A program made the position numbers and the translations under genes. The notes under the pieces were generated by a model, which saw only the letters and a program-made list of their open reading frames with translations, was not told the origin of the DNA and did not search any database. Shown piece by piece: positions 5,676-57,125 of a stretch of 64,000 nt of DNA. The DNA is from Macrostomum lignano (lineage: Eukaryota): assembly GCA_002269645.1 (NCBI GenBank), contig NIVC01001944.1, positions 1 to 64,000 of the forward strand. Reading direction: 5' to 3'. How positions within the stretch are numbered: position 1 is the first letter of the stretch; each line of letters opens with the position of its first letter.

Positions 5676-5967
5676 TCAGTGAAGCAAATATCTAAAATTG
5701 TTAACAGAAGTATAAAAGAAAAATGAACAAGAAAAAATGGTGCTCAGTTAGCCGATTCTAAAAGTGAATCGTGGATCCCCTGAGCCACGAAGAGGCCGAA
5801 CACCGTTCAGGGGGTTAATCCATAGTTCACTTTGCAGAGCAAAACAAATTCCACAGCACAGTAAACAGTGCACAGCGGTCTTTTGCAGCATTGAACTAAG
5901 GATCAATCCCGCCACTAAGAGCGGGAAGCCACAGCAAGAAATGCAAAGCGGCCAGCTTTTTGAAAGC
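5676..5967. repeat. 292-bp direct repeat, copy A, just downstream of the ZnF-SET stop codon
   Basis: TCAGTGAAGC...TTTTTGAAAGC matches 9655-9946 with no difference seen by eye; offset 3979 bp. Confidence 0.95.
5739..5813 (-). ncRNA. Putative HDV/CPEB3-like self-cleaving ribozyme fold, copy A
   Basis: Minus strand: P1 CCCCUGA/UCAGGGG; P2 GGUGUUCG/UGAGCACC; P3 GCC/GGC; L3 UCUUCGU; P1.1 U-A plus C.U; P4 CGAUUC/GAAUCG; J4/2 CUAAC with the catalytic-C equivalent at 5751. Atypical feature: +1 is C paired to G rather than a purine. Confidence 0.7.
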
Positions 5968-6035: not shown

Positions 6036-7996
6036 TCAGTCTTTAAGCCACGGATGCAGTCGAAGCACATCCGAGCGCCTTTCTCCATAATCGTAGAGTA
6101 GCTCCTCGCCTCGAGCAATGTCTCGAATGGCTTGGAAGACCAGATGCGGTTTATTGTTTACATCAGCAACAATCGGCTTCAAGTTATTTCTTCGCCGGCT
6201 ATGGTTAATGTACCGACCGACGTACTGGAAAGTGTTGGTTGCGTCGATGCAATAAGCTTGATCTCGCCAGGAAAAGAAAAACAAGAAGCAGCATGGCTTC
6301 CCTTGCTTTACAATATCTTCCTCCCGGGCGAGGCGTGCTTTTTGTCCTTGGATTAATTCTCCACCGTAAGTACAGACGACAGTGCCTTTTGGGAGGTCCG
6401 TACGGGCAAATGCCCCCAGACCCTCTGCGTCGACGCTACCGGCCTGAACCACGACGTTGCCGGTAGAAATCATTGTCTGTCGAACCACATCGGCCATAGT
6501 GAGTTGCCTCATAGACGCCATTTCGGTCGGCAGGGATCGCTCTGGACTCCCACGGCTAGCTCGGCCGTGAGGCGTCACGTGAAGGAGCGGCGTGCATGCT
6601 CCGTCCGGAGTTGTGATAGTGTCCGGGACTAGACGCTCGCGATTAGCTGCCATTGCAGGAGGGGCAACCGCAGCAGCGTGGCTATTTGAGTCCTCAGGCG
6701 AAGTCACAGTCGGCTCGAAAGGCGGATCATTGGACAGGCCATCTTTATTGGCTTCTCCTCTTTGGAGCCGAACGCTAAGGGGAACCTGACAGTGAAGAAA
6801 ATGAAGAGGACAAATGATTCATAGTGGTAACGGCATACAAATGCAGATTAACCCCAACGCTTTAATCTTTGCATTGAATAAACATGCAACAAAATTGTTC
6901 CTAAGAACACTGTTTCACACAATAAACTGTGGACTTCATTTAGTTTGACCAACTTACTTCATTGGAGGTCGCCGGTACAGCGTCGGTAGATAAGGCGACG
7001 TCTATAGTTGCAGCAGCGGCAGACTCCGGGACCAGAAGCTCGCGATTAGCTGCCATTGCAGGAGGGGCAACCGCAGCAGCGTGGCTATTTGAGTCCTCAG
7101 GCGAAGTCACAGTCGGCTCGAAAGGCGGATCATTGGACAGGCCATCTTTATTGGCTTCTCCTCTTTGGAGCCGAACGCTAAGGGGAACCTGACAGTGAAG
7201 AAAAAAGTACATCATAATGGTTACAACATGCAATTAAAGATGAACGTAACCCTTTGTTATTTTCATTAAACATACATGCAACCCAGCTGATGGTAAGATA
7301 ATTGCTCTACACCATAAACCATGGACCAGCATAAAAGACCCACCCCTTGTTGTTAATCCCTAATATTTCCTTTTGAGCAAAGTATCTAAAAGCTTTTATT
7401 TATTCATTTTTCACTTTCATCTTCTCAAATTTACCAAACATTCAACTTTTTAAGAAAAGTTGCGACCTGACCTGACCCGCGACCTGATGCTTTCAAGGTT
7501 ACAGGCCGCAGCGTTTTAACAACAAAAAACCATGGACACAAATTTTAGTTTAACACACCTCATTGGAGGTCGCCATTTCAGCGTCGGTAGCTAAGTCCGC
7601 GTCCATTGTTATAGCGGCGGCAGATTCCGGCAGGCTTTCAAGCGGCAAGGCTGGATTAAGATTTAGTTGAGGCCGGATGCCGTAAAAGGCCAACAACCGC
7701 AGGCCCTCAATTCTGTCATATGCCCTTGCCCTCGCATCAGCTACGGCTGCACGGCCGACAACAAATGCTTCGCCGAAATGGCACAGCCGCATGTGTTGTC
7801 TCATATTAGAGGCGGCAAATGAGCTGCACAGCTGGCAAAGCTTTAAATCTCTTTTGCCATGCCAACGTTTGTAGAGAATGTAGGCTTCGACTCGATCGTA
7901 GTTTGCTGTATGCTTGCTTCGAGCGTGTCGAAGGAGGGTGGCGGACCGATTGGTGGAATAGTCACACATCGGGCAAATAAACTGGTCAGGGTCCAT
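6036..7996 (-). CDS. C2H2 zinc-finger / SETD8 (PR-Set7, KMT5A)-type SET-domain fusion protein, about 472 aa, 3 exons
   Basis: Exons 7996-7559, 7188-6958 and 6785-6036, all phase 0 with GT-AG boundaries. Zinc fingers: CPMCDYSTNRSATLLRHARSKH and CQLCSSFAASNMRQHMRLCH. SET motifs: GLGAFA, VCTYGG, YCIDAT, GRYINHS, GEELLYDYG and a terminal HPWLKD, matching the SETD8 C-terminus GEELLYDYG...HPWLKH. Confidence 0.85.
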
Positions 7997-8358
7997 ATTG
8001 AATTGATTCAAGTTTTCAACGTAAACGTTTAGAGTAAAATTTAGTTCTCGATAAAACGTGTCGCGCAAACTTTCTGAAAATGAGGAAAAATCAAAATGAA
8101 ACCTTTAACTACGGTGAAAGATGAATGAACTAGGCATCTTGGTAATAGGTACTTTACAATGCACTCTTAAAGACTGTCAGACTGAAAGCAAAGAAGGCAT
8201 GTTCCGCTCGCTCGTAGTCTCAGGACAATAATAAAAGGCAGCTGAACAGATCAAATCAAATGTTTATTTGAAAGGTTGGGCGATACAACGGACTTGATAA
8301 CGCATTACAGTCCCGAATTTCTGCATAGTAGCATTAGGTTGCCAGTCACACTGAAGTT

Positions 8359-8976
8359 TTAAAGCAAATCGAGTAGTGAAACGGAATTCGAAATTGTAGG
8401 ATTTGCATTTTGTTGCAACGAAACGCTGGGAGAAGCTGGATTAAAAAAGCCATTGAAATCATTGTCTAACGTAGTTACACTACAACTGTGGCAGGGGCAT
8501 GTACAATGGCTATCAGGGCAATTGAAAATGTTTGAACGTAAAACACTTGGACCGGAGAGCTGTGAATCGGCACACTTTTCGGAGGGGTTCCTGGCGGCTA
8601 GTGATTGCAGCTTAGAAATTAAAACTTCAGCGTTTTCTTTAGCCTCGTCTAAGTTATAGGTAGATTGCGAATTTCCATTTGTCTTAGATTGCTTTCCATG
8701 TTTTACCCTAACATGGCTTGGTAAATTCGAAGTGATAACACTGCAAACAGGACACTGATAGAGGTAACCCGATTCGGTTCGCTTCTTTGCCTTTAAAAGT
8801 CCAAAAAGGCGGATTGTGGCATCAATTTGCTCTTCAGTGGCATCAGGGTGCTTTCGATTGCAATGTACCTTGAAACCAGATGCGCGTCCTGTCCAAGCAT
8901 TGCAGATCAAACAGGAAATCTGCGTATGAACCTGCACCATGTGAGACATTGTCCCGCGGGTGACATTCAAGAGCAT
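8359..8976 (-). CDS. C2H2 zinc-finger protein (5' exons not resolved)
   Basis: CLICNAWTGRASGFKVHCNRKH and CPVCSVITSNLPSHVRVKH. A minus-strand AATAAA about 90 nt after the stop suggests a separate gene. Confidence 0.65.
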   Translation of the reverse strand: MLLNVTRGTMSHMVQVHTQISCLICNAWTGRASGFKVHCNRKHPDATEEQIDATIRLFGLLKAKKRTESGYLYQCPVCSVITSNLPSHVRVKHGKQSKTNGNSQSTYNLDEAKENAEVLISKLQSLAARNPSEKCADSQLSGPSVLRSNIFNCPDSHCTCPCHSCSVTTLDNDFNGFFNPASPSVSLQQNANPTISNSVSLLDLL

Positions 8977-9654
8977 CGGGAAAACGTTGTGGGCTTATTA
9001 TTATACTGCTTCCAGGGAGGTTAGGCAAATTAAGTCTTAATTTTTGTATTCTAAGACAATGACGGAGAGGAAATGCTTTAGAGTATAAAAAATTCTGAAT
9101 CTCACATCTGAATCTCCTATCCTCTGATCGGAACCAGGTCTATCTTCCAACATGAACATCCTTTCCTCTCAACTGAAACCCTCGAGTCCGAGTCAATAAG
9201 GCTACAGGCCAAGCAGGGTGCCATTAGTTAGTGTGGGCAGTTACATTTTCAATCTCCCCAGCCAAGCCTAAAGTGCTGCTATAAATGGGATAATGAGTGC
9301 ATGGCGGGATGGGTCACTGCTATTGCTTATGGTTAACACGTAACAAAAGTAAAAGACAAAAATGTGTATATCACGATTACTAGTTCCACTTTTATTATAC
9401 TTTCGCGCTATCTTTGAAGCAGTATGCAAATATACTATTGGCATAGCGGGCGTCTAAACGCAGGCTAACATAAGAGAACTGACAAATTGCAGTGAGTGTC
9501 AAAGTGTAGTACAACGAAAAGGGACAAAAGTAAGACGCATATGCGCCTCTCGCTGCAACGACAGGCGACTGCATATAAATGCATGAAATATTAAGTAATA
9601 CAAACGAGAGAATAAAACACATTCAAGAAAGTTGCTCGTAGTTATAAATTTCAA

Positions 9655-9946
9655 TCAGTGAAGCAAATATCTAAAATTGTTAACAGAAGTATAAAAGAAA
9701 AATGAACAAGAAAAAATGGTGCTCAGTTAGCCGATTCTAAAAGTGAATCGTGGATCCCCTGAGCCACGAAGAGGCCGAACACCGTTCAGGGGGTTAATCC
9801 ATAGTTCACTTTGCAGAGCAAAACAAATTCCACAGCACAGTAAACAGTGCACAGCGGTCTTTTGCAGCATTGAACTAAGGATCAATCCCGCCACTAAGAG
9901 CGGGAAGCCACAGCAAGAAATGCAAAGCGGCCAGCTTTTTGAAAGC
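9655..9946. repeat. 292-bp direct repeat, copy B, downstream of the KDZ transposase stop codon
   Basis: Matches 5676-5967. Confidence 0.95.
9718..9792 (-). ncRNA. Putative HDV/CPEB3-like self-cleaving ribozyme fold, copy B
   Basis: Same sequence and fold as 5739-5813. Confidence 0.7.
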
Positions 9947-10109: not shown

Positions 10110-12900
10110 TTAAATACTATCAATCCATTCTTCATCTGACTCAGACTGCTCACGACTTGATTCAACGTCTGAATGACTCGGGGCTTCAACGTCATCTGGC
10201 TGATTTACGTTGGTACCAGCGTCGTTTGGATGCTGCGCATCAGCAGCAGCAGCTTCAATGCTTGCGTCAATGTGATCAAAGCGAAGAGCTTGAAGTTGCT
10301 TTAAAATAGTCTGAAAGAGGCATCGAAACTGGGCTGGCAATCCAGGTTGATGATGGAGTGTTTCACAGTGCTGTTCAAGTTTAATTTGAACGTCACGCCA
10401 CTCTTGCACAATAATGATCTTTTCCTCCGCTAGACGATTCAGCTTGTGATACAAGTCAACCACCCGTCGCTTGAACCTCTCAGACACATCGATCGAAAGA
10501 CCGAAGTAGAAGTCTGACTGGAAGTCGCGAAGCTGAATCATAGTGGGCACGCGAAGGCCTGGCGGAAGCGAGCGGGCGGCCATTCGAATGTCTGCATTTA
10601 AAGCCGCAACCTTGCGTAGACATGCTCGATTTTCTTTTTGTCCATCTGAGCAGCCACTCTGACGGATCCAATAGAATCGTTCCAAAGCAAGTGCCTTAAG
10701 CTTTGCGTAAGGTTCCCTGCTCAATGGAGAGTCGCTATTGGGATTTATGGCTTCTGCATGCCATTGTTGAGCAAGATTTAAAATGGCTACCTCAGAGATT
10801 CCGGCAGGAATAGTTAATTTGTTGTTCCGCATCAAATCGCCAGCTTGTAGAAGCAATTGCTCCATTTCAGCTGAACAAGACGCGGCTGTGCGAGTTATTA
10901 GTTTTAATCGAGCAGAAAACCAATTGGAGGCGTACAACAACTGATTAGCATTGAAGCAATGCAAAATGTAAGACATACAAGCACTTCTGCGATCGGACCG
11001 CATGTACTTTAAGCTTTTACCAAACGGTCGTAGTGCAGACCAAGCGCGCTCCGTATTCTCCCCGTCGCAAAGACCCGCTCCAGGAGTTACCCGCACGGAG
11101 TACTTTAGTTGGCATTGTCTCTCGTGGCCCAGCACATGAAAGGCGTTCACAGCGCACGTGACACTGTTAAGCTGTACACCAGATGCTGACACCATGGACT
11201 TGACACGATTGGAAATGCGACAACCTGATTTTAGGAAAAAGTTTTTAAATGAATAAATAATTGAGCTTCGTGTCGCAGTACGCATGCACGTACATAAGTA
11301 AGCACAAGCATAAGTAAGCACACACTATAAGTGTATAGTGTAAATAAGTGCAGCATGATAGAAACACGATAAAAATCAACTCACCAACATCATAGATAAA
11401 AATGAGATCCTTTGAGACGGGCTGTGTCATTAGGTAATGACGAAGAGTCTGTTCTGGATAGCACAGGCCCTCACCAGCTGTAATAATGTTGCAACCTGTC
11501 AGAAGCCTGTTATGCCGGCAAAATAAGCCAAAGAAACCGTTGACATCGTGCTTGCTGGCCCTGATCACGGGTTTTTCTGTTCCAGCCTTCCAGTTAGTGC
11601 AGCCTTCTGCAGACACTTGTGTCGTAGGAGGCGGTACAGTTGCTGGTTCTACATGAATAAGCGGTGACGGCAATGAGCGTTCAGAATCTGGCACTAGACG
11701 TTGCTTCGAACCCATACTTTGTAGTCTTCGCCATCCAAATAGAGCATCAGCACAAACTACAGACTTCCGACTTGAATTTTGGTCAGGACACAAAAGACAA
11801 CTAGCAGGCCAGCTTGCTGAACACCTCTGCAACTCTCGAAACCGCAGTAGGACTCCATTACGCTGCAATCTCTGATACACTCGATCGGCTAAACCAGGGT
11901 TCCAGCGACCTTGTCCTACGACGGAGCCTTTGAAAAGACAGGTAATTGCACGAGACAGTGGCAGTTGACCGTCAAAGCACAAGGAGTCAAGAGTTGATAG
12001 AAAGCTAATTGAAAAAAATGTTAACAATTCGCCAACGCGTGACTCGCTTCCAGGAAAGTATCCTTTTGCTAGCATGGCATCAACTTTATCACAGGATTGG
12101 CACGTATAAATTCTGGCGCAAACAATTCCGTTGATGTCAATAATCTGAATTTCGGATGATGTTGTATACTCAGAAGACAAGCTTGATTCGCTACAGCAGA
12201 ATAGAGAGACAGGCTCTTCTTCTTGAATGTCTTCAAACATTAGCGATTGAGCCTAGGAAAAAGGGTTAAATTTTGTATGCGGTGTTATAAAAATATTATT
12301 CCGTACTAAGGCTATTAGCATTCTAAATACTTTTGTTTCACGTCAAATTTAATACAGCGTTATACTGCCAAATAGGCGTCATTGTTTTCTTCACAGTAAA
12401 CTAATATCCTTAGAAATTGCAATTTAGATTTTAAAACAACTTACATTCCACTGGAGGAACTTGTGAGCAGCAAAATTTCCATGCGTTATCTTTTTACAAT
12501 CACTGCAGACATCGTACTGACAATGAACACATCGGAAAACTCCAGGCTGCATGTCGCAACGAACACAGCATTTTAACTCGAATGACTGTTTATAACCGGC
12601 AGTGTAACTTTCCACAATGGCCGTGTAGTCTTCCCATTCCGTGAATTTAGGCGGCTGTTCAAACTTATTACTAATCTGTTCAGGCATAGAGTCATGGTTT
12701 CCTGCACCCAGATCTTGTGAAAGACTGCCGCCAGTGACTGTGGAACACGAGGAAGCCGTGGCAATCGATGTAGTACTTTCCAATGCATTAGGCGCATTAG
12801 ACGTTCGCAATATCCTTGGCCTTCCGCGTTGGCCAGTCATCAGTACTACTTCAGATTGTCTTTTTCTCGATTTCGCATTTAGTTTTCTTGACGAAATCAT
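10110..12900 (-). CDS. KDZ (Kyakuja-Dileera-Zisupton) transposase with N-terminal CxC cysteine clusters, about 812 aa, 3 exons, intact
   Basis: Exons 12900-12445, 12252-11385 and 11224-10110 total 2439 nt with an open frame across the GT-AG junctions (FLQWN|AQSLM and YDVG|CRIS). Motifs: CVRC...RCVHC...CSDC...H...H, CLLC, CADALF, FCRH, GEGLCYP, IYDVGC, AFHVLGHERQCQLKY, GAGLCDGENTERAWS. Confidence 0.88.
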
Positions 12901-14236
12901 TGCTGAAATTCGTGAGGATCATTCTGAATTGTATATTACATCATATGCTAAGCTCAAAAGGTGTTTATCTATATCAGTGTCTTTTTAGAGCAGGTGCTTA
13001 GCCATCTGCTCAGCCACCTGCAAGGCAACCTGCTCAGGCATTGCAGCTCAGGCAGTGGCTGGCTTGGAGCATCAGCTGATTTGATTAAAGTTGATTAAAA
13101 TCTAGCAGATTTATAGTCTATAATTTGTTATCCATAGCCATATTGCATTGAGTTGTGTTTATAAGTATATAATAAGCAGCTTAAATTATTATTTGGTGTA
13201 ATTGGGATGCTTTGGAATATGTTTTCTAAATTTTCCACTTCATCTTGTATTCTTGATTGTTGTATTTTCTTACAAGTCTTTTCTGGGTCCTTATGTCTAT
13301 GAAAAAGGGTAGGCCTACCTGCATATAGTGGCTCTTTGATTTTAATTTATAAATTTTAGATGTATACATTTTTTGTTTTAATAGTTGCAGTTTAATGAGC
13401 CACAACACAAATGCCCACAAAGTTTTTATCAGTTTTATTTTATTTGGAATATTCCAATAAATTATAATATATAAATATATATTATTTATCCTAACAAAAA
13501 GAATTCTATATGAATATTATATTTACATATTTATAGTCACAGAATCATGCACTGAAAAAGTTCTTCTTAGGCTTGATAACAATATAGAAACATATAGAAA
13601 CTAATAGATAAAAGTCTTAAATAACATTTATCATTTTTGATATTCTGTTTTTTAATTTGACTAAGAACATCTAAAGAAATCATACTTTTTTATTAGAATA
13701 TTTAAACTTATTTAAAGGCAACAAAGGTACAAAAGAATAGGCAGCCTTATGGTCATAACATTATGGTTTTAACTTTTTTCTGTCAATTCACTAACTTTGA
13801 ATTACCAATAGATTAAAAATTTAATAGATTATATGGCCATTAATGTTTATATCTAATTATGCAAATACTATAATTTTATCTATAGTTTGTTTCAATCTTC
13901 CAAAGCTTTTTATTTGTTTTCAAAAGGTACACAAAGTTAATGATGTCTTTTGCTTAAAAAAATGTTCAATTTTTTATAAAAATAGCTTTTTGCCAACTGA
14001 TATTATACTAATCCAACATTTTACCATTCATTTTTGGCATTTGTTATTTGTCCAATGACTGGACAAATAGCCTTTTTGCTATTTGTCTGCTTAAATTGCT
14101 AACACAAGTATCTGTTTGTTTTATGATGAATATTCTAAATTTTTAAGACCTTTTCTTGTATATTAATTAATATTTTCTTATATACTGTTAGCAAAGCAAT
14201 GTATTCAATTTGGCATAATTTTGTATATAAGACACA

Positions 14237-17358: not shown

Positions 17359-19074
17359 TTCCCTTCCTATAAATCATTTGACGTTAGAGACATTTTACAA
17401 CTCTCGCCCTACTTTATCTATTAGGCTAACTTTATGTATGACACGACGCAAAATATTAGGAGCATCAGCGTTAATAATGCCTTGAAAGTCTTTAAATAAT
17501 CGATACAACACTAGGTATTATAAAATTCCAACCCCAAAGCTCACTGGGGCGAAAAGACTTTGTCTTCATTAACTAGTATAACAACATAATAAACTAATAA
17601 TCAAGATACAAATAAGAAGTCTTTAAAGTCTAGGAATATTTATCCTTGTAGTTTCTATGAAATAGATTTTTTAGCATTATTAATTTAATTGGACAAATGA
17701 CAAAATGTCTATTTGTCCAGTATTAACTAGATGAATAAGAAAGCATGGTCATAATCCAGTAACTGGACAAATGACAATTGCCTTTATTTTTAGATTGTAT
17801 GCTAGTATAGGCTTATATTATACATAAAGAACATTTGGCAGAAAAATTAGCTAGCAAGGCAATGGTGAGCAAAATATTGACTTTTTACTATTTTCCAAAT
17901 ATGTCTATCTTATCTGGCTGGAATGAGCCACCTGACATAGGCCCTACTCACTATATATTCCACTCTTGACTCCAAGGTGCATATAGGAAAAAGATTATTT
18001 AAGTGTAAGGTGTGCGATGAAAAATACAAAGTGGGACTGTAGCCTAAGAGCAATGCTGTTACCTAGCTATTTAAGAAGTAGTACTTCAACCAACCTGCTG
18101 TCTAGCAACAAATGAGATCTACTGTCACTGACATATGACAAGCATATCTAAGATGCTTAAAGTTTAAAAAAATTCTTAATACTCTGGTCACAGTTGCTGT
18201 GTCACTGTCACAGATTCATCAGTTAATTCATCACAAATAAGCCCTCAAATCTCTAGAAGGTATTCATTTGAAGTAGCCAGGATCACCATATTATTTTTTG
18301 TTATTGGCCCTTGCTCTATGCACTGCCTACAAACTTGAAGGTCTATATTATATTATTACACAATCTAAATATACTAAATCTCTAAGGTTTGTTTGTATGC
18401 TTGAATGAATGTCCATAATGCTCTAGTTGTATAACTAAATCATGCAAATATATATCTAGATTTGAAAGGCCTTCTCGTCTCAATTTCAGCACAAAAAGTG
18501 ACAGGAATCAGGTCGATAGGTCATTCGCAAGTCAGTTTCATCACATACTACTATTGTATCAATATTTACACAAACTACACGTCACAATTTACACAATGAT
18601 GTATGACAAAAAATTACATATATTACAAACTACACGTCACAATTTACACAAATATTTACACAATAATTAATATATTACAAAAAAGCTATGCGATTAGCGA
18701 ATACGTGGCTACACACACATCAGCCATAGCTTTTATGATAGCTAGAAGAAAAAATTATTGCCGATGTAACGCATCAGCTATGGTAAACAAAGAAACACTA
18801 GGAGAACTAATGACGCAGCGCGAGAAAAATCTGTTTTAGATTTGCGGCTGTTAGTTTGTTCACATAAGATAGGCATATTAAGTGTTTTAGTAAAATAAAA
18901 TGCAAATACAATAAATAAACGTATTTTTTTCTCCTAAAACAGAACCCACCGATCGCATCAGTTTTTTTTATCAATAAATTATTACATTTGTTATACTACA
19001 GATAAATTTCCGGTGGTCTAAGCCAAGTGTAATAACTAGCGCAACGATCCCTAAATCATCGCTTGTGACGCTTG

Positions 19075-20780
19075 GAACCCCAAATCAACTCAAGAAGGCC
19101 CAAACTAGCCCTTGAAAGCTCAAACTAGCCCTGGAAAGCTCAAACTAGCGCTGGAAAGCTCAAATTGGCGCGGGAAAGCTCGAATTGGCACCGGAAGCTA
19201 AATTTGGCGCCAGGATCCCCAAATTGGCGCCAGGAACCCCAAATCAACTCAAGAAGGCCCAAACCAGCCCTAGGAAGCTCAAACTAGCCCTGGAAAGCTC
19301 AAACTAGCGCTGGAAAGCTCAAATTGGCGCGGGAAAGCTCGAATTGGCGCCGGAAGCTAAATTTGGCGTCAGGATCCCCAAATTGGCGCCAGGAACCCCA
19401 AATCAACTCAAGAAGGCCCAAACCAGCCCTAGGAAGCTCAAACTAGCCCTGGAAAGCTCAAACTAGCGCTGGAAAGCTCAAATTGGCGCGGGAAAGCTCG
19501 AATTGGCGCCGGAAGCTAAATTTGGCGCCAGGATCCCCAAATTGGCGCCAGGAACCCCAAATCAACTCAAGAAGGCCCAAACCAGCCCTAGGAAGCTCAA
19601 ACTAGCCCTGGAAAGCTCAAACTAGCGCTGGAAAGCTCAAATTGGCGCGGGAAAGCTCGAATTGGCGCCGGAAGCTAAATTTGGCGCCAGGATCCCCAAA
19701 TTGGCGCCAGGAACCCCAAATCAACTCAAGAAGGCCCAAACCAGCCCTAGGAAGCTCAAACTAGCCCTGGAAAGCTCAAACTAGCGCTGGAAAGCTCAAA
19801 TTGGCGCGGGAAAGCTCGAATTGGCGCCGGAAGCTAAATTTGGCGCCAGGATCCCCAAATTGGCGCCAGGAACCCCAAATCAACTCAAGAAGGCCCAAAC
19901 CAGCCCTAGGAAGCTCAAACTAGCCCTGGAAAGCTCAAACTAGCGCTGGAAAGCTCAAATTGGCGCGGGAAAGCTCGAATTGGCGCCGGAAGCTAAATTT
20001 GGCGCCAGGAACCCCAAATCAACTCAAGAAGGCCCAAACCAGCCCTAGGAAGCTCAAACTAGCCCTGGAAAGCTCAAACTAGCGCTGGAAAGCTCAAATT
20101 GGCGCGGGAAAGCTCGAATTGGCGCCGGAAGCTAAATTTGGCGCCAGGATCCCCAAATTGGCGCCAGGAACCCCAAATCAACTCAAGAAGGCCCAAACCA
20201 GCCCTAGGAAGCTCAAACTAGCCCTGGAAAGCTCAAACTAGCGCTGGAAAGCTCAAATTGGCGCGGGAAAGCTCGAATTGGCGCCGGAAGCTAAATTTGG
20301 CGCCAGGATCCCCAAATTGGCGCCAGGAACCCCAAATCAACTCAAGAAGGCCCAAACCAGCCCTAGGAAGCTCAAACTAGCCCTGGAAAGCTCAAACTAG
20401 CGCTGGAAAGCTCAAATTGGCGCGGGAAAGCTCGAATTGGCGCCGGAAGCTAAATTTGGCGCCAGGATCCCCAAATTGGCGCCAGGATCGCCGAATCAGC
20501 GCTGGAATTTGCCAACGGGCGTAGAAGTGGCAGCATATATCAGCTTGCTACTTTTTGGCGCCGATTTTAATATACCGGCGCCAATTTCAGCCTTTGGGCG
20601 CCCATTTTAGCGCCCTGGCAAGGTCAATGCATTTAGTTCTCACGCGATGGCGCCAAAAAATTTTTTTTTCTTTTTTTGAATTAGTGCCATGTATCTTGCC
20701 AACCAATACGAGTCAAGTTCTGGCGTCTGCTTTTCCACAGCCGCCTGGCTGGGTCCCGTCAACAAGCTATTTTTAGCGTG
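19075..20780. repeat. 159-bp higher-order tandem repeat (about 9 copies, built from ~20-bp subunits) plus a unique right flank shared with 28750-29260
   Basis: GGAACCCC anchors at 19233 and 19392; subunits GGAAAGCTCAAA... and TTGGCGCC. Confidence 0.9.
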
Positions 20781-24783: not shown

Positions 24784-27349
24784 TCGGCCTTCTTCGAGCA
24801 ACTCTCGGTGCGGGTGGAGGAGATGGCGCAACGTGACACAGTGTCATTCTCGGAGACCTGAACGCAGTTCTGCGTAGGTCCGAGCGATCGCTGTTCGTGA
24901 CAGCGCGAGAGAACGGCAACACCGGAGCGCTAGAGGACTTCCTGGAGAGACAGGACATGGTGTCGGCCAACACCAGATTCCGCAAGTCACCGGGCAGGCT
25001 CGCGACCCTCGTGGGCTGCAAGCGGAGGCGGCGGAACGCGCGCGGCCGGAACGCTACGCGGAGGCTGGCACAGCTCGATCACGTGCTTGTGCGCTTTCGT
25101 GAGCGCCGCCGCGTCACCAACTGCCGCACCATTACGCCGCTGGCTCTGCGGTCCGACCATCGGCTGCTCATCTGCGACCTTCGGCTTCGGGACCCGCTCT
25201 ACCGTCCGCCAAAGCGGCCACCGCGGCGCTACTACCGCGCGCTCAGGGACGCCGAGACGCGACGTCGCTTTGCCGGTGCCTTTGTCACTGCGCTGGGCGA
25301 CAAGCGTGGAGGAGCCGAGTACGCGGAGGTGAGCGCTGCAGTTCGAGCCGCTGCGGAGCAAGCAGTCCCGCTGATGCGACCGGCCCAGCGCGGGCAGCCG
25401 GTCTGGCAGGACGACCCCGCGATCGACGAAGCGAGGGAACATCTGGAGAGGCTCCGTCTGAGTGGGTGGCAAACTCGCGAGGCGGATGAGGCTCTGGCGG
25501 CTGTCTACCTGCAGCGACAGCAGTCCGCTGTCGATGACGCCATCCAAGCCGTCTCTGCCGCAGGGCCCGATGCCAGAGGGCGCGTGGCCTGGTCCGTCAT
25601 CAACACTCTGACGGGGCGAAAGCGGCGCATTGCGCTCAACCTGGCAGGCGACACTCCGGATGAGCGCAGGAACGAGCTGCGCGAGATCTTCGCCGCCATT
25701 GTCAACGCGCCGCCCCCTCCGCTTCCAGAAAATCTGAGGCTGCCGCCGGAGACGCCGTTGCCGGCGGAGGAGAGCTTCAACGTTGCCCCAGTCAGCACAG
25801 CCGACGTTGTGAAGTTCGCTCGGCAGTCGCCGGGCGGCAAAGCGCTTGGTCCGGACGAGGTGCCCACCGAGGCACTGCGGATCCACTGCATGGCCACTGA
25901 GGTCGCCAGAGTGATGAACCGCGTGCTTTCCGGTGAGGTGGCGCCAAACGAATGGACCACGGCGCACATCGTCGCCATTCCAAAGAAGCCGGGCACCACC
26001 AAGCTCGAGGAGCATCGAGGCATCTGCCTACAGTCCTGCGCCGCGAAGCTGTTCAACCGCATGCTGCTATCGCGGCTACAGCCTGTGCTGGACCCGTACC
26101 TGCGGCATGAGCAGAACGGATTCCGGCCCCATCGCGGCACAGTGACGCAGATCCTAACTCTTCGGCGAGTCATCGAGGAGGCGCGCATCCGCCAGTTGAC
26201 CCTGATCCTGATCTTCGTCGATTTTCAGGAAGGCCTTCGACTCGGTCGTGAGGGACGCGCTCCCAGAGGTGCTCCGTGCGTACAACGTGCCAGAGCTGCT
26301 GATTTCTGCTGTCATGGCGCTGTACCACGGCACGACGGCTGCTGTCTCAACACCGGACGGCCTATCGGATTTCTTCGGGACATCCTCCGGGGTGCTCCAG
26401 GGAGATACGCTAGCGCCGTTCCTATTTATTCTGGTGCTTGACTGGGTGCTACGGACTGCTCTGCTTTCCAACGACGACGGCTTCCTGCTGCGGCGACGCG
26501 TGGGTCGACGCCAACCGGAGAGACGGCTCAGCGTGCTTGGCTACGCCGATGACCTCGCCCTGCTGTCCTCGACCGTCGAGGGCGCCCAACGACAGCTGGA
26601 TAGGCTGGTTGCCGTTGCGGCGAGCGTCGGCCTGGTGGTCAACACGCAGAAGACCGTCGTGCTATGCGTGCCGGACGACACCGAGGCTGCAATCTTCTGC
26701 CGAGGCGCTGACGGACAGGCGAGTGAGCTTCCAAGATGTCAGCAGTTCGTCTACCTCGGCGGTCTGGTTCCCGACGTCCGCGAGGATCTGCGGCGTCGCC
26801 GAGGACTTGCCTGGGCTGCCTTTCGTTCTATAAGGTCAGTCCTGCAGTCCGAGGCCCTACCGGACCGCCAGAGGGCGGCGCTGTTCCAGGCGGTGATCGA
26901 GACCGTCCTGTTATACAACGCCGAGACCTGGACGCTGACAGACTCGCTCGAGGCTCAAGTCGACGCGGCGCACGCTGGCCTGCTGCGCGCCGCCTTCAAG
27001 ATCGGCAACGAGCGAGTCACCCTCACCAACACGGCGCTCTATCATCGCACCGGCCTGGCCCGTCCTAGCGATCTGCTGCGCCGTCGGCGACTCCAGCTGG
27101 CAGGCCACGTCATCCGCGCCGAGGCCTACTGTCCAGAGCCGGTGCAGGAGGTGCTGCTACTTACGTTGCAGGCACCCTACCGGCGGGGACAGGCGAGGAC
27201 ACGGCGCTACGTCGACTGTCTGCTGGCTGACGCCGGCGCCCCGGACTCTGCCGGCGGTGCGGCCTTTGTTTGCGCCCAAGCCTTGAAGCGTGCCATCTGA
27301 CGCTGCTTTTGCGATCCGGCAGCGTACTCTGTTGTTGTTGTTTGTTGTT
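24784..27349 (+). mobile_element. 5'-truncated RTE-like non-LTR retrotransposon (partial APE endonuclease plus RT)
   Basis: APE motifs VILGDLNA, SANTRF, LDHVLV and SDHRL. RT motifs KALGPDEVP, IPKKPG, QNGFRPHR, DF-KAFDS, GVLQGDTLAPFLF and YADD. (TGT)n-type 3' tail. 9-bp TSD CTGAACTCT at 24775-24783 and 27350-27358. Single-base frameshifts at about 24841 and 26225. Confidence 0.92.
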
Positions 27350-27519
27350 CTGAACTCTCAGCAAATAGTGATCTAGATGGAGTATACCTTATTTAAAAAT
27401 AATCAATAACAAAACAATCAGCAATAGCAAGTCCAAAAATGACACTTTTGATTTTTATAGTGCAAAATAGATATAAATATGCGCTGATCCCCGAAGCCAT
27501 GCCTTAAAGCCCAAAACAG

Positions 27520-28760
27520 CGCTGGAAAACTCAAATTGGCGCGGGAAAGCTCAAATTGGCGGGAAAGCTCAAATTGGCGCCGGAAGTCAAATTTGGCGAC
27601 AGGATCACCAAATCGGCGCCAGGATCGCCGAATCAGCGCCGGAATGCTGCAATCAGCTCGACAAAACCTAAACCAGCGCTTGAAAGCTCAAATTGGCGCG
27701 GGAAAGCTCGAATTGGCGCCGGAAGTCAAATTTAGCGCCAGGATCACCAAATCGGCGCCAGGATCGCCGAATCAGCGCCGGAATGCTGAAATCAGCTCGA
27801 GAAAACCTAAATCAGCGCTGGAAAGCTCAAATCGGCGCGGGAAAGCTTGAATTGGCGCCGGAAGTCAAATTTGGCGCCAGGATCACCAAATCGGCGCCAG
27901 GATCGCTGAATCAGCACCGGAATGCTGAAATCAGCTCGAGAAAACCTAAACCAGCGCTGGAAAGCTCAAACCAGCGCTGGAAAGCTCAAATCGGCGCTGG
28001 AAAGCTCAAATTGGCCCGGGAAAGCTCGAATTGGCGCCGGAAGTTAAAATTTGGCGCCAGGATCACCAAATCGGCGCCAGGATCGCCGAATCAGCGCCGG
28101 AATGCTGAAATCAGCTCGAGAAAACCTAAACCAGCACTGGAAAGCTCAAATCGGCGCTGGAAAGCTCAAATTGGTCCGGGAAAGCTCGAATTGGCGCCGG
28201 AAGTCAAATTTGGCGCCAGGATCGCCAAATCGGCGCCAGGATCGCCGAATCAGCGCCGAAATGCTGAAATCAGCTCGAGAAAACCTAAACCAGCGCTGGA
28301 AAGCTCAAACCAGCGCTGGAAAGCTCAAATCGGCGCTGGAAATCTTAAATTGGCCGGGGAAAGCTCGAATTGGCGCCGGAAGTTAAAATTTGGTGCCAGG
28401 ATCACCAAATCGGCGCCAGGATCGCCGAATCAGCGCCGGAATGCTGAAATCAGCTCGAGAAAACCTAAACCAGCGCTGGAAAGCTCAAATCGGCGCGGGA
28501 AAGCTCGAATTGGCGCCGGAAGTCAAATTTGGCGCCAGGATCACCAAATCAGCGCCAGGATCGCTGAATCAGCACCGGAATGCTAAAATCAGCGCAAAAA
28601 AGCCTAAACCAGCGCTGGAAAGCTCAAATCGGCGCTGGAAAGCTCAAATCGGCGCTGGAAAGCTCAAATCGGCGCTGGAAAGCTCAAATTGGCGTGGGAA
28701 ATCTCGAATTGGCTCCGGAAGTCAAATTTGGCGCCAGGATCCCCAAATCAGCGCTGGAAT
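27520..28760. repeat. Tandem array related to 19075-20480 (diverged subfamily)
   Basis: Same GGAAAGCTCAAA / TTGGCGCC subunits and the same unique downstream flank (...GGAAT(T/G)TGCCAACGGG...). Confidence 0.9.
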
Positions 28761-28970
28761 GTGCCAACGGGTGTAGAAGTGGTAGCATATATCAGCTTGC
28801 TACTTCTTGGCGCCATTTTTAATATACCGGCGCCAATTTCAGCCTTTGGGCGCCCATTTTAGCGCCCTGGCAAGGTCAATGCATTTAGTGCTCACGCAAT
28901 GGAGCCGAAAAAAAGTTTTTTTTCTTTTTTGAATTAGTGCCATGTATCTTGACAACCAATGCGAGTCAAG

Positions 28971-33948: not shown

Positions 33949-35117
33949 ATGTCTGTAGAGCAATCAGCCACTGGAACTCAAGGCGCACCTCTGGTGGGTG
34001 AACCCATAAAGCTGCCTGAGACTGAGAAGGCTCAAAATGAAGCCGAGTTAAACCAAATTGCTACTGAGAGTAGCGTGGGTGCTATTTTAGGAAGTCTTGA
34101 CAGAACGCTGGGCAACTTGGATGCTAAGCTTGACTATGCGAGAGTGCCTGAGGCAAAGCTGAAAGCCCCACCTTGCTACCACCCTAAAATCAGATTTGAG
34201 CTCTGGGAGACACAACTCCGGGCCTATTTAAGCGTTAACAGAGTTCAGCGGGAGCACTGTGGCGGTGTTCTTTTCTCTCTACTATCGCCAGAAGTCCAAG
34301 AGTTTTACTACAATAGCAAACTACAGGATCTAGCTTTTCCAGCAGCATTAGAAGCTCTCCGCGAGCGGTACACGGACTCTAGCAGTGCCGATAAATTTTA
34401 CATTGAGCTGACAGTTGCCCACCAAGCTGATGGCGAAGGAATTCAAGAATTCTGTGACCGTCTTGTAGCCCTAGCCACCGCAGCTAAAATTTCTGCTCCA
34501 CACAGCGATCCATTGGTTCGGTCACGTTTTTGTTATGGAGTTCTAGACAAAAATCTAGCTGAGAGACTAATTACAATGACCCAGGAGTCACCCAAAGCAA
34601 CCCTTCAAGACCTCCTGAAGAAAGCCAAAAGTTTTCTAGACATTCAGAAGCTGCTGAAACCGACTGAGACAAGCAAGATCCGGCAGTTAGAAGTAGACGA
34701 GATAAGCCGACTCAAAAACAGGATCCAAGAACTTGAGACAGAAGCCAAGCAGAGGGGCAAGTTCGAACACGAATTTAATAGCCAGCCTACTGGGGGATTT
34801 AGACCACAGGCTTTGCACACTGCCACTGATAAACCACGAGGTACAATGCGCCTATCACGGGCAGGCACGCAGGCAAGCGGCACTGCTTCAGGTGCGGTTC
34901 AGCTGATCACCTGGTAGCAGAGTGCCCTGGCTCAGGTGCACCTGAAAACGGTAAATTTTCATGGCGCCACCCGAGGCAGCCCACACAGAAGGCTCAGCTA
35001 AAGTGGAAAAAGAGCTGGGTAGAATTTCCTACTGGTCAAATGCCTACGGATTCATCCAGTCTCTGCCTCTGGGAGATTCTGTTTTCGTACACTTCTCGCA
35101 GCTCAGCAGCGAGTTAA
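33949..35117 (+). CDS. gag: Gag; its CCHC zinc knuckle lies in the -1 frame after about 34830-34880
   Basis: Gag-like ORF 33949-34917. The knuckle CFRCGSADHLVAEC is at 34884-34925 in a frame that stays open to TAA 35115-35117. Confidence 0.8.
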
Positions 35118-37423
35118 AGGATCTTGTCCCCGCCCATCAGATTGTCGGAGCGCCCGTAGAGTTTATCCGGCTAGCCGACAAGGGCAAGAAAAACGACCGT
35201 GCTGTTGATGTTGTGTGTAGTAACCAGGATGTCCGGTGCAGCCAAACCGTGTCTAGGGCAGAATCCTCCAGCTCCGGGTACTACCTGCAGGCCACTGTGG
35301 GAGACATTAAGCTGATTGGGTGTCTAGATAGTGGTTCAAATGCGTCCATCATCAGCCCAGAAATTCGGGACAAACTGTTAGCAGCCGATCCTATCAATAA
35401 TCGCTTCACGGCTGCAACTACAGTGCAGTCAGCTTCGGGATTCAATGGTGCCTCCAGCCGAATCCTTGGCAAGTTAGTTTGCGAGGTTCAAGTAGCGAAT
35501 GAGACAAAGCCGCACGTTTTCCTAGTCATAGAACACTCGATCTCCGACACTCTCTTTGGGATCGACTTCATGCGGAATTTCCAGATTAATTTATTGGTGG
35601 CAGAGGGTCGAGCGACGGCTGGAGGTGAGCTTATTCCTGTCATCGAAGGGGACAGTAGCATCTTCCAAGTCAAGAGAGTGCTGGCGGCTTGCAATGTCGA
35701 ACTCCCGCCCAGGTCGGAGACTCTAATCCCTGGGAGGGTGATAGACAGTCAGCCTAACACCTGCGGCTCCGTGGGTGGCAAGATTTTTGCGAACGACTCG
35801 AGCCTCTTAATAGCACACTCGGTAGACCAAGTAAACAGTTCCAATCACATCTTGCTGCGGGTCTTAAACACCAGTGAAGAACCAGTATCACTCAGAAGAG
35901 AAGATGAAATGGGATCCTTCCAGCAGTTGGGGCCAAACGAGACAATCAGTAAAACTTCAATTTCTGAAAAAGACTTTAAAATCGAAAACACTGATCAGCT
36001 CCTTAGAAAACTCAATCAGCTGCCTAGTCCAGATGAAGGTACAGCGAAGTGGCTATCAAACCAGTTTCGCCTAACGGAGTCCAAACTCAGCGAGGAACAG
36101 TTGGGAACTACACTGAAAATGCTTAACTATTTCTTAAGTCAAATCTCTCGTAGTGAGCACGATATCTCGAGAACCCAATTGCATGAACTGGCTATCGAAC
36201 TGAAAGACCCTAGCTGTAGGCCGATCACGCAGCCATCACGCCGCACCAGCCCGGCTCAAAAAGATTTCCTTGACAAATATATAGAACAGCTAGTGGAGCA
36301 GGGCATAGTAGAAGAGTGTGATTCCGAGTGGGCCTCACCAATTGTCTTAGTCAAAAAGAAGGACCAGTCTTACAGAATGTGTGTTGACTACAGAGCGGTC
36401 AACAAGCTAATAAAGCCGTGTAGCTTTCCGCTCCCATTAATGGATGAAACGTTTGATAGCCTTGCCGACTCTACCATCTTTTCAACACTAGATTTAACAA
36501 GTGCATACTGGCAGGTAGGAATTAGAGAGCAAGACCGAGACATTACGGCTTTTTCTTGCCCCCAGGGCACATTCCGTTGGCGAGTTGTGCCATACGGTAT
36601 CAAAACGGCACCATCTAACTTTGCTAAGCTGATGCACCGTGTGCTCAAACCCTTGCTGATGAGAGTTAGCCTCGTCTATCTTGACGACGTCATTATCAAA
36701 GCTCGAACTAGTAGCGAAATGATAACAAACCTAGCGCTGGTGTTTTGGCAACTACAAAAGGCAAACCTAAAAATTAAGCCAGCTAAATGCGAGCTTTTCA
36801 GGGAAAAACTAAAGTTTTTAGGATTTGTAGTATCGGCGGATGGAATCGAGACGGACCCCAGCAAAACAGAGGCCGTCCAGAGTTGGTGTAGGCCAAAGAC
36901 AGGGAAACAACTCTTGTCATTCTTAAATTTTGCCAACTATTACCGTAAATTTGTGCCAAAATTCTCGATCATAGCAGCTCCACTGTATGCTATCGCTAAC
37001 TCCGATAGGTTTCACTGGGAAGAAAAGCACGAAGAAGCTTTCAAACAGTTAAAGGACAGTCTCTGCAATCCTCCAACTCTGGCGTACCCGGATATGCGTC
37101 CAGAAGCCGGCCCCTTCGTGCTAGACTGTGACAGCTCTGGCCTGGGGGTGGGAGGAGTCCTGTCCCAGGTTGGCAAAGCTGGTAAAGAGCATGTGATAGC
37201 ATTCGCTTCGAAGAAGTTCAACAATGCACAAAGAAATTATTGTGCAACAATGCGCGAGCTGCTCGGTTTGATTATCATGCTAGAGCAGTTCCGCACTTAC
37301 CTCTTAGACAGGCCTTTCGTCGTCCGAACTGACGCCGTGGCGCTTAAATGGCTTCATTCCAAAAAAACACGCTACGGGAATGCTAGCCCAGTGGCTTGTG
37401 ATCCTAGAGCCTTACAACTTTAG
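34961..37423 (+). CDS. pol: Pol part 1: cold-shock domain, aspartic protease, RT, RNase H
   Basis: Cold-shock motifs YGFI and VFVH (35018-35215); LDSG protease; SPIVLVKKKD, YLDD and LDCDSS. One extra base in the A7 run near 37360 splits Pol. Confidence 0.92.
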   Translation: MAPPEAAHTEGSAKVEKELGRISYWSNAYGFIQSLPLGDSVFVHFSQLSSELKDLVPAHQIVGAPVEFIRLADKGKKNDRAVDVVCSNQDVRCSQTVSRAESSSSGYYLQATVGDIKLIGCLDSGSNASIISPEIRDKLLAADPINNRFTAATTVQSASGFNGASSRILGKLVCEVQVANETKPHVFLVIEHSISDTLFGIDFMRNFQINLLVAEGRATAGGELIPVIEGDSSIFQVKRVLAACNVELPPRSETLIPGRVIDSQPNTCGSVGGKIFANDSSLLIAHSVDQVNSSNHILLRVLNTSEEPVSLRREDEMGSFQQLGPNETISKTSISEKDFKIENTDQLLRKLNQLPSPDEGTAKWLSNQFRLTESKLSEEQLGTTLKMLNYFLSQISRSEHDISRTQLHELAIELKDPSCRPITQPSRRTSPAQKDFLDKYIEQLVEQGIVEECDSEWASPIVLVKKKDQSYRMCVDYRAVNKLIKPCSFPLPLMDETFDSLADSTIFSTLDLTSAYWQVGIREQDRDITAFSCPQGTFRWRVVPYGIKTAPSNFAKLMHRVLKPLLMRVSLVYLDDVIIKARTSSEMITNLALVFWQLQKANLKIKPAKCELFREKLKFLGFVVSADGIETDPSKTEAVQSWCRPKTGKQLLSFLNFANYYRKFVPKFSIIAAPLYAIANSDRFHWEEKHEEAFKQLKDSLCNPPTLAYPDMRPEAGPFVLDCDSSGLGVGGVLSQVGKAGKEHVIAFASKKFNNAQRNYCATMRELLGLIIMLEQFRTYLLDRPFVVRTDAVALKWLHSKKTRYGNASPVACDPRALQL

Positions 37424-56243: not shown

Positions 56244-56454
56244 AGTAGTAGGGGTTAGCAGAACACGGCCGACAGGGCGGAGATAGGAGGAGGGGGTAAT
56301 GCATTGGGATAGGAGGGGCGGCCTATCTCTTTACACTGGGGGATGGTTAACACTGCAGAGATAGGAGGAGAGGCGCCCTATCTCTTTACATTGGGGTGGT
56401 TAACACTGCAGAGATAGGAGGAGAGGCGCCCTATCTCTTTACATGGGGATGGTT

Positions 56455-57125
56455 AACACTGCAGAGATATGAGCTCTATCTCTGTGTATTGGGGACGGCT
56501 AAGCACTGTGGAGATATGAGCCCTATCTCTGTGCATTGGGGACGGCTAAGCACTGTGGAGATATGAGCTCTATCTCTGTGCATTGGGGACGGCTAAGCAC
56601 TGTGGAGATATGAGCCCTATCTCTGTGCATTGGGGACGGCTAAGCACTGTGGAGATATGAGCCCTATCTCTGTGCATTGGGGACGGCTAAGCACTGTGGA
56701 GATATGAGCCCTATCTCTGTGCATTGGGGACGGCTAAGCACTGTGGAGATATGAGCCCTATCTCTGTGCATTGGGGACGGCTAAGCACTGTGGAGATATG
56801 AGCCCTATCTCTGTGCATTGGGGACGGCTAAGCACTGCGGAGATATGAGCCCTATCTCTGTGCATTGGGGACGGCTAAGCACTGTGGAAATATGAGCCCT
56901 ATCTCTGTGCATTGGGGACGGCTAAGCACTGTGGAGATATGAGCCCTATCTCTGTGCATTGGGGACGGCTAAGCACTGCGGAGATATGAGCCCTATCTCT
57001 GTGCATTGGGGACGGCTAAGCACTGTGGAGATATGAGCCCTATCTCTGTGCATTGGGGACGGCTAAGCACTGTGGAGATATGAGCCCTATCTCTGTGCAT
57101 TGGGGACGGCTAAGCACTGCGGAGA
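56455..57125. repeat. 47-bp tandem repeat with an internal hairpin, about 14 copies
   Basis: GCACTGTGGAGATATGAGCCCTATCTCTGTGCATTGGGGACGGCTAA; stem GAGATA/TATCTC; anchors at 56551 and 56598. Confidence 0.95.

Follow-up and report, generated by a model that had tools for sequence, protein, structure and literature searches.

An HDV-like ribozyme fold in a duplicated module behind two genes of a KDZ DNA-transposon region of Macrostomum lignano, a candidate gene-end processing module

Eukaryotic ribozymes of the hepatitis delta virus (HDV) type have been described at retrotransposon 5′ ends and in one mammalian intron, and other copies mostly have no assigned role. The present analysis concerns a 292-nt module, here called R, that contains an HDV-like ribozyme fold and occurs twice on the minus strand of a 64,000-nt stretch of Macrostomum lignano DNA (GenBank assembly GCA_002269645.1, contig NIVC01001944.1, positions 1 to 64,000, hereafter the window), once behind a zinc-finger and SET-domain (ZnF-SET) gene and once behind a transposase gene of the Kyakuja-Dileera-Zisupton (KDZ) DNA transposons. 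The ribozyme class is known, its carrier and position here are new, and R is tentatively read as a gene-end RNA-processing module behind both co-oriented genes of this KDZ region, a reading to which we give a little less than an even chance.

In retrotransposons, the 5′-end ribozyme has a characteristic signature: what lies upstream of it varies, and a conserved element body follows downstream (PMC6765202). Co-transcriptional activity, a cut at the first nucleotide of its element and a one-pair P1.1 characterise the L1Tc ribozyme (PMC3185411); L1Tc begins CCCTGGC (primer 5′Pr77, PMC4748587), that is, with C at +1, and trypanosomatid ribozymes have P1 G-C pairs in inverted orientation (PMC4035085). 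Extension of P1 at the expense of P1.1 has been described as a cause of inhibition for L1Tc and R2 (PMC3185411). Theta ribozymes are HDV-like and shape the ends of structured RNAs next to them, namely tRNAs (PMC10879173). Retrozymes are hammerhead-bearing elements of the long terminal repeat (LTR) or tandem kind that yield circular RNAs (PMC4918200, PMC7229834).

The fold in the window is an HDV-type nested double pseudoknot of 75 nt, running on the minus strand from 5813 to 5739, with an identical second copy from 9792 to 9718. Its parts are as follows.

5739 to 5813, minus strand: HDV-like ribozyme fold, copy 1, found by alignment to RF02682, by covariance model R1 and by descriptors; predicted scission between C5814 and C5813
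9718 to 9792, minus strand: HDV-like ribozyme fold, copy 2; predicted scission between 9793 and 9792; candidate catalytic C at 9730
5807 to 5813, minus strand: 5′ strand of P1, CCCCUGA, forming seven Watson-Crick pairs with UCAGGGG (5783-5777)
5797 to 5804, minus strand: 5′ strand of P2, GGUGUUCG, forming 8 bp, two of them G.U, with UGAGCACC (5746-5739)
5784 to 5796, minus strand: P3 and L3, GCC-UCUUCGU-GGC, a 13-mer that is the same in phage, giant-virus and bacterial HDV-like ribozymes
5753 to 5776, minus strand: J1/4, AUCCA (5776-5772), and the P4 hairpin, CGAUUC-ACUUUUA-GAAUCG (5771-5753)
5747 to 5752, minus strand: J4/2 region, G-C-U-A-A-C, in which C5751 is the equivalent of HDV C75 and the candidate catalytic C

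Read 5′ to 3′, the RNA is CCCCUGA-AC-GGUGUUCG-GCC-UCUUCGU-GGC-UCAGGGG-AUCCA-CGAUUC-ACUUUUA-GAAUCG-G-CUAAC-UGAGCACC, in the helix order P1-P2-P3-L3-P3′-P1′-J1/4-P4-J4/2-P2′, with 7, 8, 3 and 6 bp in P1, P2, P3 and P4, all of them standard pairs. A first-pass annotation, made from the sequence alone, had placed the fold at these coordinates on the minus strand, and its P1 of 7 bp, P2 of 8 bp, P3 of 3 bp and L3 of UCUUCGU were confirmed from the sequence; the candidate catalytic C that it had put at 5751 is borne out by the G-C-U-A-A context. P1.1 is likewise as described there, a U-A pair with a C.U mismatch: A5776 and U5791 of L3 make the single pair, and U5775 lies opposite C5792. The J4/2 segment C-U-A-A is present, but its length of 4 nt did not stand, as with a 3-bp P3 it is 5 nt (C-U-A-A-C), and the extra C might instead form a pair with P3's first G. 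At +1 stands C5813, paired to G5777 without a G.U wobble, and the −1 base (5814) is C as well. P1, P3 and P4 were recovered in the ViennaRNA minimum-energy fold, for the 75-mer by itself as well as for all 292 nt of the module; P2, the pseudoknot helix, lies outside both the Rfam model and the R1 model.

For family membership, a search of the whole window with Rfam at gathering thresholds gave no match, and the ribozyme motif was absent from the listing of a permissive E-value scan of the whole window. When 251 nt were scanned permissively, the model of the F. prausnitzii HDV ribozyme, RF02682, aligned end to end at 5740-5813 on the minus strand with 21 bits and an E-value of 0.063, the gathering score of that model being 44 bits. 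The HDV and CPEB3 (RF00622) models gave no match at E≤10, and RF02682 was the sole HDV-family model to align; the first-pass annotation had called the fold HDV/CPEB3-like and had pointed to HDV/CPEB3 covariance models, in whose place RF02682 comes as the nearest family.

Relatives were sought with a pattern made of the candidate's own P3-L3-P3′ 13-mer plus GGCUAA (19 core bases). This pattern recovered complete HDV-like folds in two of six viral-contig loci, and over viral and metagenome loci together the screen gave 34 such folds, comprising a gut-phage/F. prausnitzii type, a type from the spacers of tRNA arrays (loci L004 and L031) and single instances in loci L028, L075 and L088. The tRNA-array ribozymes of L031 scored 24 to 44.8 bits with RF02682, and 10 of the 11 listed fell under the gathering score; since these relatives are mostly sub-threshold, the sub-threshold Rfam score of the candidate says little.

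Plain MAFFT alignments of the ribozymes were structurally inconsistent and were replaced by an alignment of the candidate and 16 natural relatives (A3), hand-segmented by structure and N-padded. Standard pairs filled 96.3% of the cells of this 17-sequence alignment, compared with 31-43% when partners were slid by 1-3 columns, figures that are inflated by the fitting of the alignment to the structure, a bias that the slid controls share in part. Compensatory changes were found at 21 of the 24 pairs, and none of 500 shuffles reached the observed values. Every P1, P2, P3 and P4 pair is filled by the candidate, with helix sequences unlike those of any of the 16 relatives; G-C-N-A-A is invariant (17/17), and the U...C-G columns of L3 show little or no variation. 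Model R1, built from the 16 relatives with the candidate left out and run over the window with filters off, matched exactly at 5739-5813 and 9718-9792 on the minus strand with 39.2 bits, followed by a next best match of 10.5 bits; its E-value of 2.5e-7 is partly circular, a point that weighs against the case made here, because half of the R1 seeds had been found via the 19 core bases of the candidate. A loose pseudoknot descriptor gave about 0.75 matches per simulated 64 kb and its strict version 0 in 20 simulated windows. Using the stricter descriptor (7-bp P1, P2 and P4 of no fewer than 7 and 5 bp, respectively, L3 as UNNNCGN, and C.AA), both copies passed, and 0 matches were found in 101 Mb of first-order Markov sequence.

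These results bear on the possibility, to which we assign a small chance, of a look-alike, or of a ribozyme that has decayed, inactive and functionless in either case. Such an origin would fit the score under the Rfam gathering threshold, the combination of C at +1, one-pair P1.1 and an extra J4/2 base, and the rate at which the loose descriptor fires by chance per 64 kb, but it sits poorly with the empty 101-Mb screen by the strict descriptor, with the distance between 39.2 and 10.5 bits in the R1 scan, and with four perfect helices around a 13-nt P3/L3 core and a G-C-U-A-A that are the same as in natural ribozymes. Moreover, the ribozyme of L1Tc (L1TcRz) is active although it has C at +1 and only one pair in P1.1. 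On comparison of sequences we conclude that this is a genuine fold of the HDV family, member-like in kind, and its assignment nearest to the F. prausnitzii/theta type, not to CPEB3, is well supported, with two atypical features.

The first of these features is the C in a C-G pair at +1, against which all 16 relatives start with a purine (13 G and 3 A), mostly in a G.U pair; the caveat in the first-pass annotation about this base thus concerned a real outlier. The second is the one-pair P1.1, a state shared only by the ribozyme of L028, the other 15 relatives having two pairs; among the relatives, C or U in L3 covaries with G or A in J1/4 in the P1.1 pair. Both features count against activity, and the one-pair P1.1 or the extra C of J4/2 could slow or abolish catalysis. 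Because the active L1Tc ribozyme has both, C at +1 and a one-pair P1.1 are not disqualifying, and because C(−1) is unable to pair with A38, P1 is not extended at the expense of P1.1. Site-specific self-cleavage in vitro is predicted as probable, on the better side of even.

Among the relatives, tRNA arrays with HDV-like ribozymes in their spacers were seen at L031 (300-2400, plus strand) and at L004 (7149-8524, minus strand, identical to L074), on a contig labelled as a giant-virus metagenome-assembled genome and on a related metagenome contig. At least 11 ribozymes lie in L031; a T-run precedes each of them, and the gap to the following tRNA is 3-4 nt. [quoted passage not shown]

Both ribozyme copies lie inside R, the parts of which are given here.

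5676 to 5967, minus strand: repeat module R, copy 1, starting 68 nt past the stop codon of the SET gene (6038-6036)
9655 to 9946, minus strand: repeat module R, copy 2, starting 163 nt past the stop codon of the KDZ transposase gene (10112-10110)
5814 to 5967, minus strand: hairpin cluster 5′ of the ribozyme, with three short hairpins and a 92-nt imperfect hairpin (5906-5815)
5676 to 5738, minus strand: tail after the ribozyme, with A-U6-C, a pyrimidine-rich tract, CUGUUAAC and UUUUAG/AUAUUUGCUUCACUGA

Comparison of the window with itself by BLAST gave the two copies of R, 3979 nt apart, as a direct repeat identical (100%) across all 292 nt; the repeat is sharply bounded, the flanks of both copies are unrelated, and homology ends at the edges of the repeat. 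On the minus strand, the layout is 154 nt of hairpins, the 75-nt ribozyme and a 63-nt U-rich tail. The second copy announced in the first-pass annotation at 9718-9792 therefore exists and is identical, but it is not an independent observation, as both ribozymes lie inside one identical repeat and count as one. The repeat itself, its highly stable hairpin cluster and the pyrimidine tract with AG behind the ribozyme had escaped that annotation. No third or diverged copy of R was found in the window by nhmmer, sensitive blastn or model R1. Outside the window, exact pieces of R had 0 matches in viral contigs, a family-specific DNA pattern had 0 matches in metagenomes, and a pattern for the AUCCA subtype gave three chance matches without the fold in prokaryotic genomes and 0 in viral contigs; a literature search on the ribozyme core sequence returned unrelated papers only.

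The hairpin cluster of 154 nt has a minimum free energy of −59.6 kcal/mol (z −5.74), a stability reached by 0 of 200 dinucleotide shuffles and lying in the top ~2% of 284 sampled 154-nt windows, the more extreme of which were minisatellite arrays. Its structure persists in the fold of the whole module, and the base of the 92-nt hairpin ends 1 nt ahead of the predicted cleavage site. As an observation in its own right, the 92-nt hairpin (5815-5906, minus strand) resembles a pre-miRNA or a miniature inverted-repeat transposable element (MITE), and its sole echo in Rfam was a chance-level match to mir-359 on the plus strand (16 bits, E 1.5).

The two genes in front of the modules lie on the same strand.

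10110 to 12240, minus strand: KDZ transposase gene, whose two long coding blocks match Pfam KDZ (PF18758) at E 1.2e-18 and 6.7e-8, with a weak CxC1 match besides
6036 to 8976, minus strand: zinc-finger and SET gene of several ORF blocks, with Pfam SET (PF00856) at E 3.3e-20 and zf-H2C2_5

In the first of these genes, the KDZ domain is clear, and a GT..AG intron of ~159 nt (about 11384-11226, donor GUGAGU) joins the two KDZ blocks and restores YDVGC; terminal inverted repeats (TIRs) or element ends were not found in the window. In the second, blocks 8976-8359 and 8068-7550 encode C2H2-type fingers, and block 6707-6036 the SET domain. The first-pass annotation had put one ribozyme behind a KDZ transposase gene and one behind a SET gene, which the Pfam-supported ORFs, on the ribozymes' own strand, uphold. 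Its remark on the lack of an obvious AATAAA holds for both stretches from stop codon to ribozyme, in neither of which AATAAA or ATTAAA occurs. On the gene strand, the first AATAAA after the KDZ gene is at 9396, within the TATA-like GTATAATAAAAG, and there is none after the SET gene down to 4500.

The position behind two stop codons, together with hairpins abutting the cleavage site, points to a gene-end processing module. In outline, a polymerase passing the stop codon of either gene would transcribe the hairpin cluster first and the HDV-like ribozyme next. The ribozyme would adopt its double pseudoknot and cut at its own 5′ edge, between C5814 and C5813 in one copy and between 9793 and 9792 in the other. 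The upstream product would be the KDZ or ZnF-SET message, with a 3′ untranslated region (UTR) of 317 or 222 nt, respectively, ending in a 2′,3′-cyclic phosphate 1 nt beyond the base of the 92-nt hairpin, which would then protect the new 3′ end; the downstream product would be the ribozyme with its 5′-OH, followed by the U-rich tract. Transcript ends would in this way be set regardless of the insertion site, and the KDZ transcript would be parted from the ZnF-SET transcript or from host DNA, while the self-contained upstream hairpin would shield the ribozyme from mispairing with flanking sequence. The scheme takes it that the ORFs are transcribed through R and that one element presumably holds both genes. 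By a rough estimate, the chance that two random insertions in a 10-kb region would both fall on the coding strand shortly after two stops is ~1e-4. From sequence features, formation of mRNA 3′ ends by self-cleavage, as suggested in the first-pass annotation, is plausible and suits the anatomy better than a role of the kind known from LINEs.

Several points weigh against this scheme. Messages of RNA polymerase II (Pol II) that are cut by a ribozyme, and so lack a poly(A) tail, are usually unstable, and the exonuclease that drives termination acts poorly on a 5′-OH end. Poly(A) signals could also be supplied by the TATAAA variants at 10018 and 5657. The two copies are identical, so that covariation is absent at the locus itself, and 100% identity with sharp edges is equally expected from two recent insertions of a small mobile element. 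The placement of KDZ and SET in one element lacks terminal inverted repeats or element ends in the window, and no homologous transposon turned up in the protein or DNA searches: protein searches with the KDZ C-terminal ORF, the SET ORF and the spliced KDZ core gave no relative, or distant bacterial SET proteins only, and exact look-ups of two window ORFs gave no match.

The identity and sharp edges of the copies, set between unrelated flanks, are also the starting point for an explanation we regard as unlikely, that two recent insertions brought R here as a small non-autonomous mobile element or a piece of a retroelement, with a ribozyme that serves this element and a position behind genes that is incidental. 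In one version it would be a head-to-tail junction, in which the 3′ end of one copy runs into the 5′ end, with its ribozyme, of the copy behind it. Mobile elements crowd the window (a Gypsy-type element, a non-LTR reverse transcriptase (RT), a Polinton-like DNA polymerase B and a MITE-like pair), and eukaryotic HDV-like ribozymes are mostly tied to retroelements or SINE-like derivatives (PMC6765202, PMC4035085). Against this stand the structure and placement of R: no target-site duplication (TSD), terminal inverted repeat, poly(A) or simple-repeat tail, primer-binding site (PBS) or polypurine tract (PPT) was found in it, no inverted partner of its end occurs anywhere in the window, and neither the non-LTR element at 24897-27300 nor the rest of the window resembles it. 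Only two copies are present in 64 kb, both in gene orientation and 68-163 nt past a stop, the placement estimated above at ~1e-4 for random insertion, and the repeat begins 154 nt upstream of the cleavage site, not at it.

What follows each copy bears on a further explanation, that the ribozyme serves the downstream unit in the style of R2, RTE and L1Tc, freeing the RNA that follows, which for copy 2 would be the ZnF-SET cistron; the freed RNA would have a structured 5′ end for cap-independent translation, or its pyrimidine-AG acceptor would take a spliced leader. We consider this quite improbable. After copy 2 comes the ZnF-SET gene, with R ~680 nt upstream of the first long ZnF ORF and an acceptor-like UUUUAG after the ribozyme; after copy 1, in contrast, there is nothing coding-like, only low-complexity ORFs and minisatellites, and the KDZ gene itself is without an R upstream. 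HDV-like ribozymes release downstream RNAs and can act like an internal ribosome entry site (PMC6765202), and the first 77 nt of L1Tc are reported to act as ribozyme plus promoter (PMC3383444), but most of the conserved module here lies upstream of the cut, and the TATA-like GTATAATAAAAG at ~9400 suggests that ZnF-SET has a promoter of its own. No reverse transcriptase ORF was found after either copy of R. The sequence GTATAATAAAAG itself (9385-9405, minus strand), between R copy 2 and the ZnF ORFs, is TATA-box-like and contains the only nearby AATAAA; it could be a ZnF-SET promoter or a distal KDZ poly(A) signal.

In the tail, a UUAAC is present and the end resembles a 3′ splice acceptor, comparable to the acceptor of the KDZ intron, AAAAUCAG|G. 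The ribozyme might accordingly be placed within a 139-nt intron of the 3′ UTR (GUGAAC at 5830 to UUUUAG at 5692) and compete with splicing, as proposed for CPEB3, switching the gene between a spliced, polyadenylated mRNA and a truncated one; to this we attach very little probability. A GU at 5830-5829, the branch-like UUAAC, a pyrimidine tract and an AG at 5693-5692 do bracket the ribozyme, the size is near that of the KDZ intron (about 159 nt), and CPEB3 and other intronic ribozymes are known (PMC6765202, PMC10919898). The donor GUGAAC is nevertheless weak beside the gene's own GUGAGU, identity between the copies ceases 16 nt past the AG of the tail, that is, 16 nt into the supposed exon, where the downstream flanks differ, no poly(A) signal lies nearby downstream, and RF00622 (CPEB3) gives no match. 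A matching bracket is seen at copy 2 (9671-9809, minus strand).

Returning to the reading of R as a gene-end module, its most far-reaching form is a portable cassette, independent of poly(A) signals, in which hairpins and ribozyme would together form the 3′ ends of DNA-transposon mRNAs and split a multi-gene transcript; in that form it is rather doubtful. If true, it would be the first natural HDV-like ribozyme to act as a former of mRNA 3′ ends and the first link of the class to a cut-and-paste transposon, and a natural counterpart of the ribozyme-plus-stabiliser cassettes of synthetic biology. Mobile elements would then also use self-cleavage for transcript 3′ ends that are independent of the landing site, and the use of ribozymes would extend from retroelements to cut-and-paste elements. 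A literature search gave no paper linking KDZ/Zisupton elements, or DNA transposons generally, with HDV-like ribozymes.

Other features of the window were recorded as follows. Upstream of the KDZ gene lies a B-box-like ORF (12424-12900), and near the same gene a pair of 45-nt inverted repeats, 80% complementary and 3.6 kb apart (14058-14102 and 17677-17721), is possibly the termini of another DNA transposon. In the ZnF-SET region, internal duplications (6622-6801 with 7025-7204 at 98.9% identity, and 6939-7029 with 7544-7630 at 79%) suggest recent duplication of exons or segments. For the SET domain (6036-6707), the nearest relatives in a collection of 5.8 billion proteins were bacterial or metagenomic SET proteins of ~160 aa with 35-39% identity, none of them eukaryotic, for which the make-up of the database may be the cause. 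On the plus strand, a Gypsy-type LTR element with protease, RT, RNase H and integrase lies at 33949-40115, a non-LTR reverse transcriptase split over two ORFs at 24897-27300, and, at 61932-63398, a protein-primed DNA polymerase B of Polinton/Maverick-like type that has an endonuclease VII domain. Unusually dense minisatellites with periods of 16-580 nt occupy 1-2400, 19074-20498, 27506-28761, 44957-45770, 46147-46602, 47556-48494, 56311-57131 and other segments, and a 20-mer theme, GGCGCC/AAAGCTCAAAT, is common to several arrays in two places (19-20.5 kb and 27.5-28.8 kb).

Several known identities were tried for R and for the arrangement of R, gene and R, and were rejected. As the terminus of a transposon, R would need an inverted partner of its end, and the window holds none. 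For a SINE derived from a Pol III gene or a tRNA, there is no tRNA, and the A- and B-box-like motifs that are adjacent are, by eye, not properly spaced. An LTR element or retrozyme enclosing the gene was set aside, there being no TG..CA ends, PBS, PPT or TSD, the ribozyme being of HDV and not hammerhead type, and the copies not being tandem. Retrozymes resemble the locus in that two identical, ribozyme-bearing direct repeats surround a 3.7-kb segment, and the 292-nt size and compact fold are like those of animal monomers; they differ in ribozyme type, in that the enclosed segment here has a protein-coding gene, and in the non-tandem arrangement of the copies. The discontinuous hammerhead in the 3′ UTR of rodent Clec2 genes (Martick et al. 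2008, cited in PMC6765202) is alike as a Pol II 3′-UTR ribozyme that would remove the downstream part, but belongs to another ribozyme class, is carried by a host gene and comes without an upstream hairpin cluster.

The ribozymes in the 5′ UTRs of R2, RTE and Baggins are of the same class and free the RNA of a mobile element from a neighbouring transcript (PMC6765202); theirs stand at that RNA's 5′ end, whereas here the ribozyme is behind ORFs and the useful product would be the upstream fragment. L1TcRz is alike in its mobile-element carrier, which it cuts out of longer transcripts, in a P1 that starts with a run of C (CCCUGGC, PMC4748587), in the C at +1 and in the single-pair P1.1. It differs in being the first 77 nt of a retrotransposon, with RT downstream and variable sequence upstream, whereas here the upstream sequence is conserved, RT is absent and the setting is a DNA-transposon gene region. 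A retrotransposon 5′-end ribozyme of the R2, RTE or L1Tc type was accordingly rejected, with 154 nt conserved upstream, only 63 nt beyond the ribozyme and no RT following; the first-pass annotation had already set the locus apart from the LINE context, rightly so, as the repeat extends upstream and no RT lies downstream. With CPEB3 (RF00622), the locus shares an HDV-like fold, a weak P1.1 and a Pol II gene setting, but the core sequence differs, and the CPEB3 ribozyme is housed in a conserved host gene, within a long intron; a CPEB3-type identity was rejected, with no RF00622 match and an intron around the motif only weakly possible.

The closest described systems are drz-Fpra-1 (RF02682) and the theta ribozymes of gut phages (PMC10879173), minimal HDV-like ribozymes that share with the locus an L3 of UCUNCGU, a P3 of GCC/GGC and a J4/2 of G-C-U-A-A. 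A theta ribozyme as such was rejected, with no tRNA anywhere in the window, though the core sequence is common to both. The window differs from these systems in that J1/4 is AUCCA, not AGGCAA or AGUAA, so that P1.1 is one pair, in that +1 is C and not G or A, and in that the host is a eukaryote with spliced genes and has no tRNA near the ribozyme. Theta ribozymes, a precedent for the gene-end scheme, are alike in standing beside a strongly structured RNA whose end the ribozyme would shape, and the arrays of L004 and L031 show the same kind of arrangement, their tRNA spacers being filled by ribozymes that lie against the 5′ end of the following tRNA; in Macrostomum lignano, the partner is upstream and is a hairpin cluster behind a protein-coding gene.

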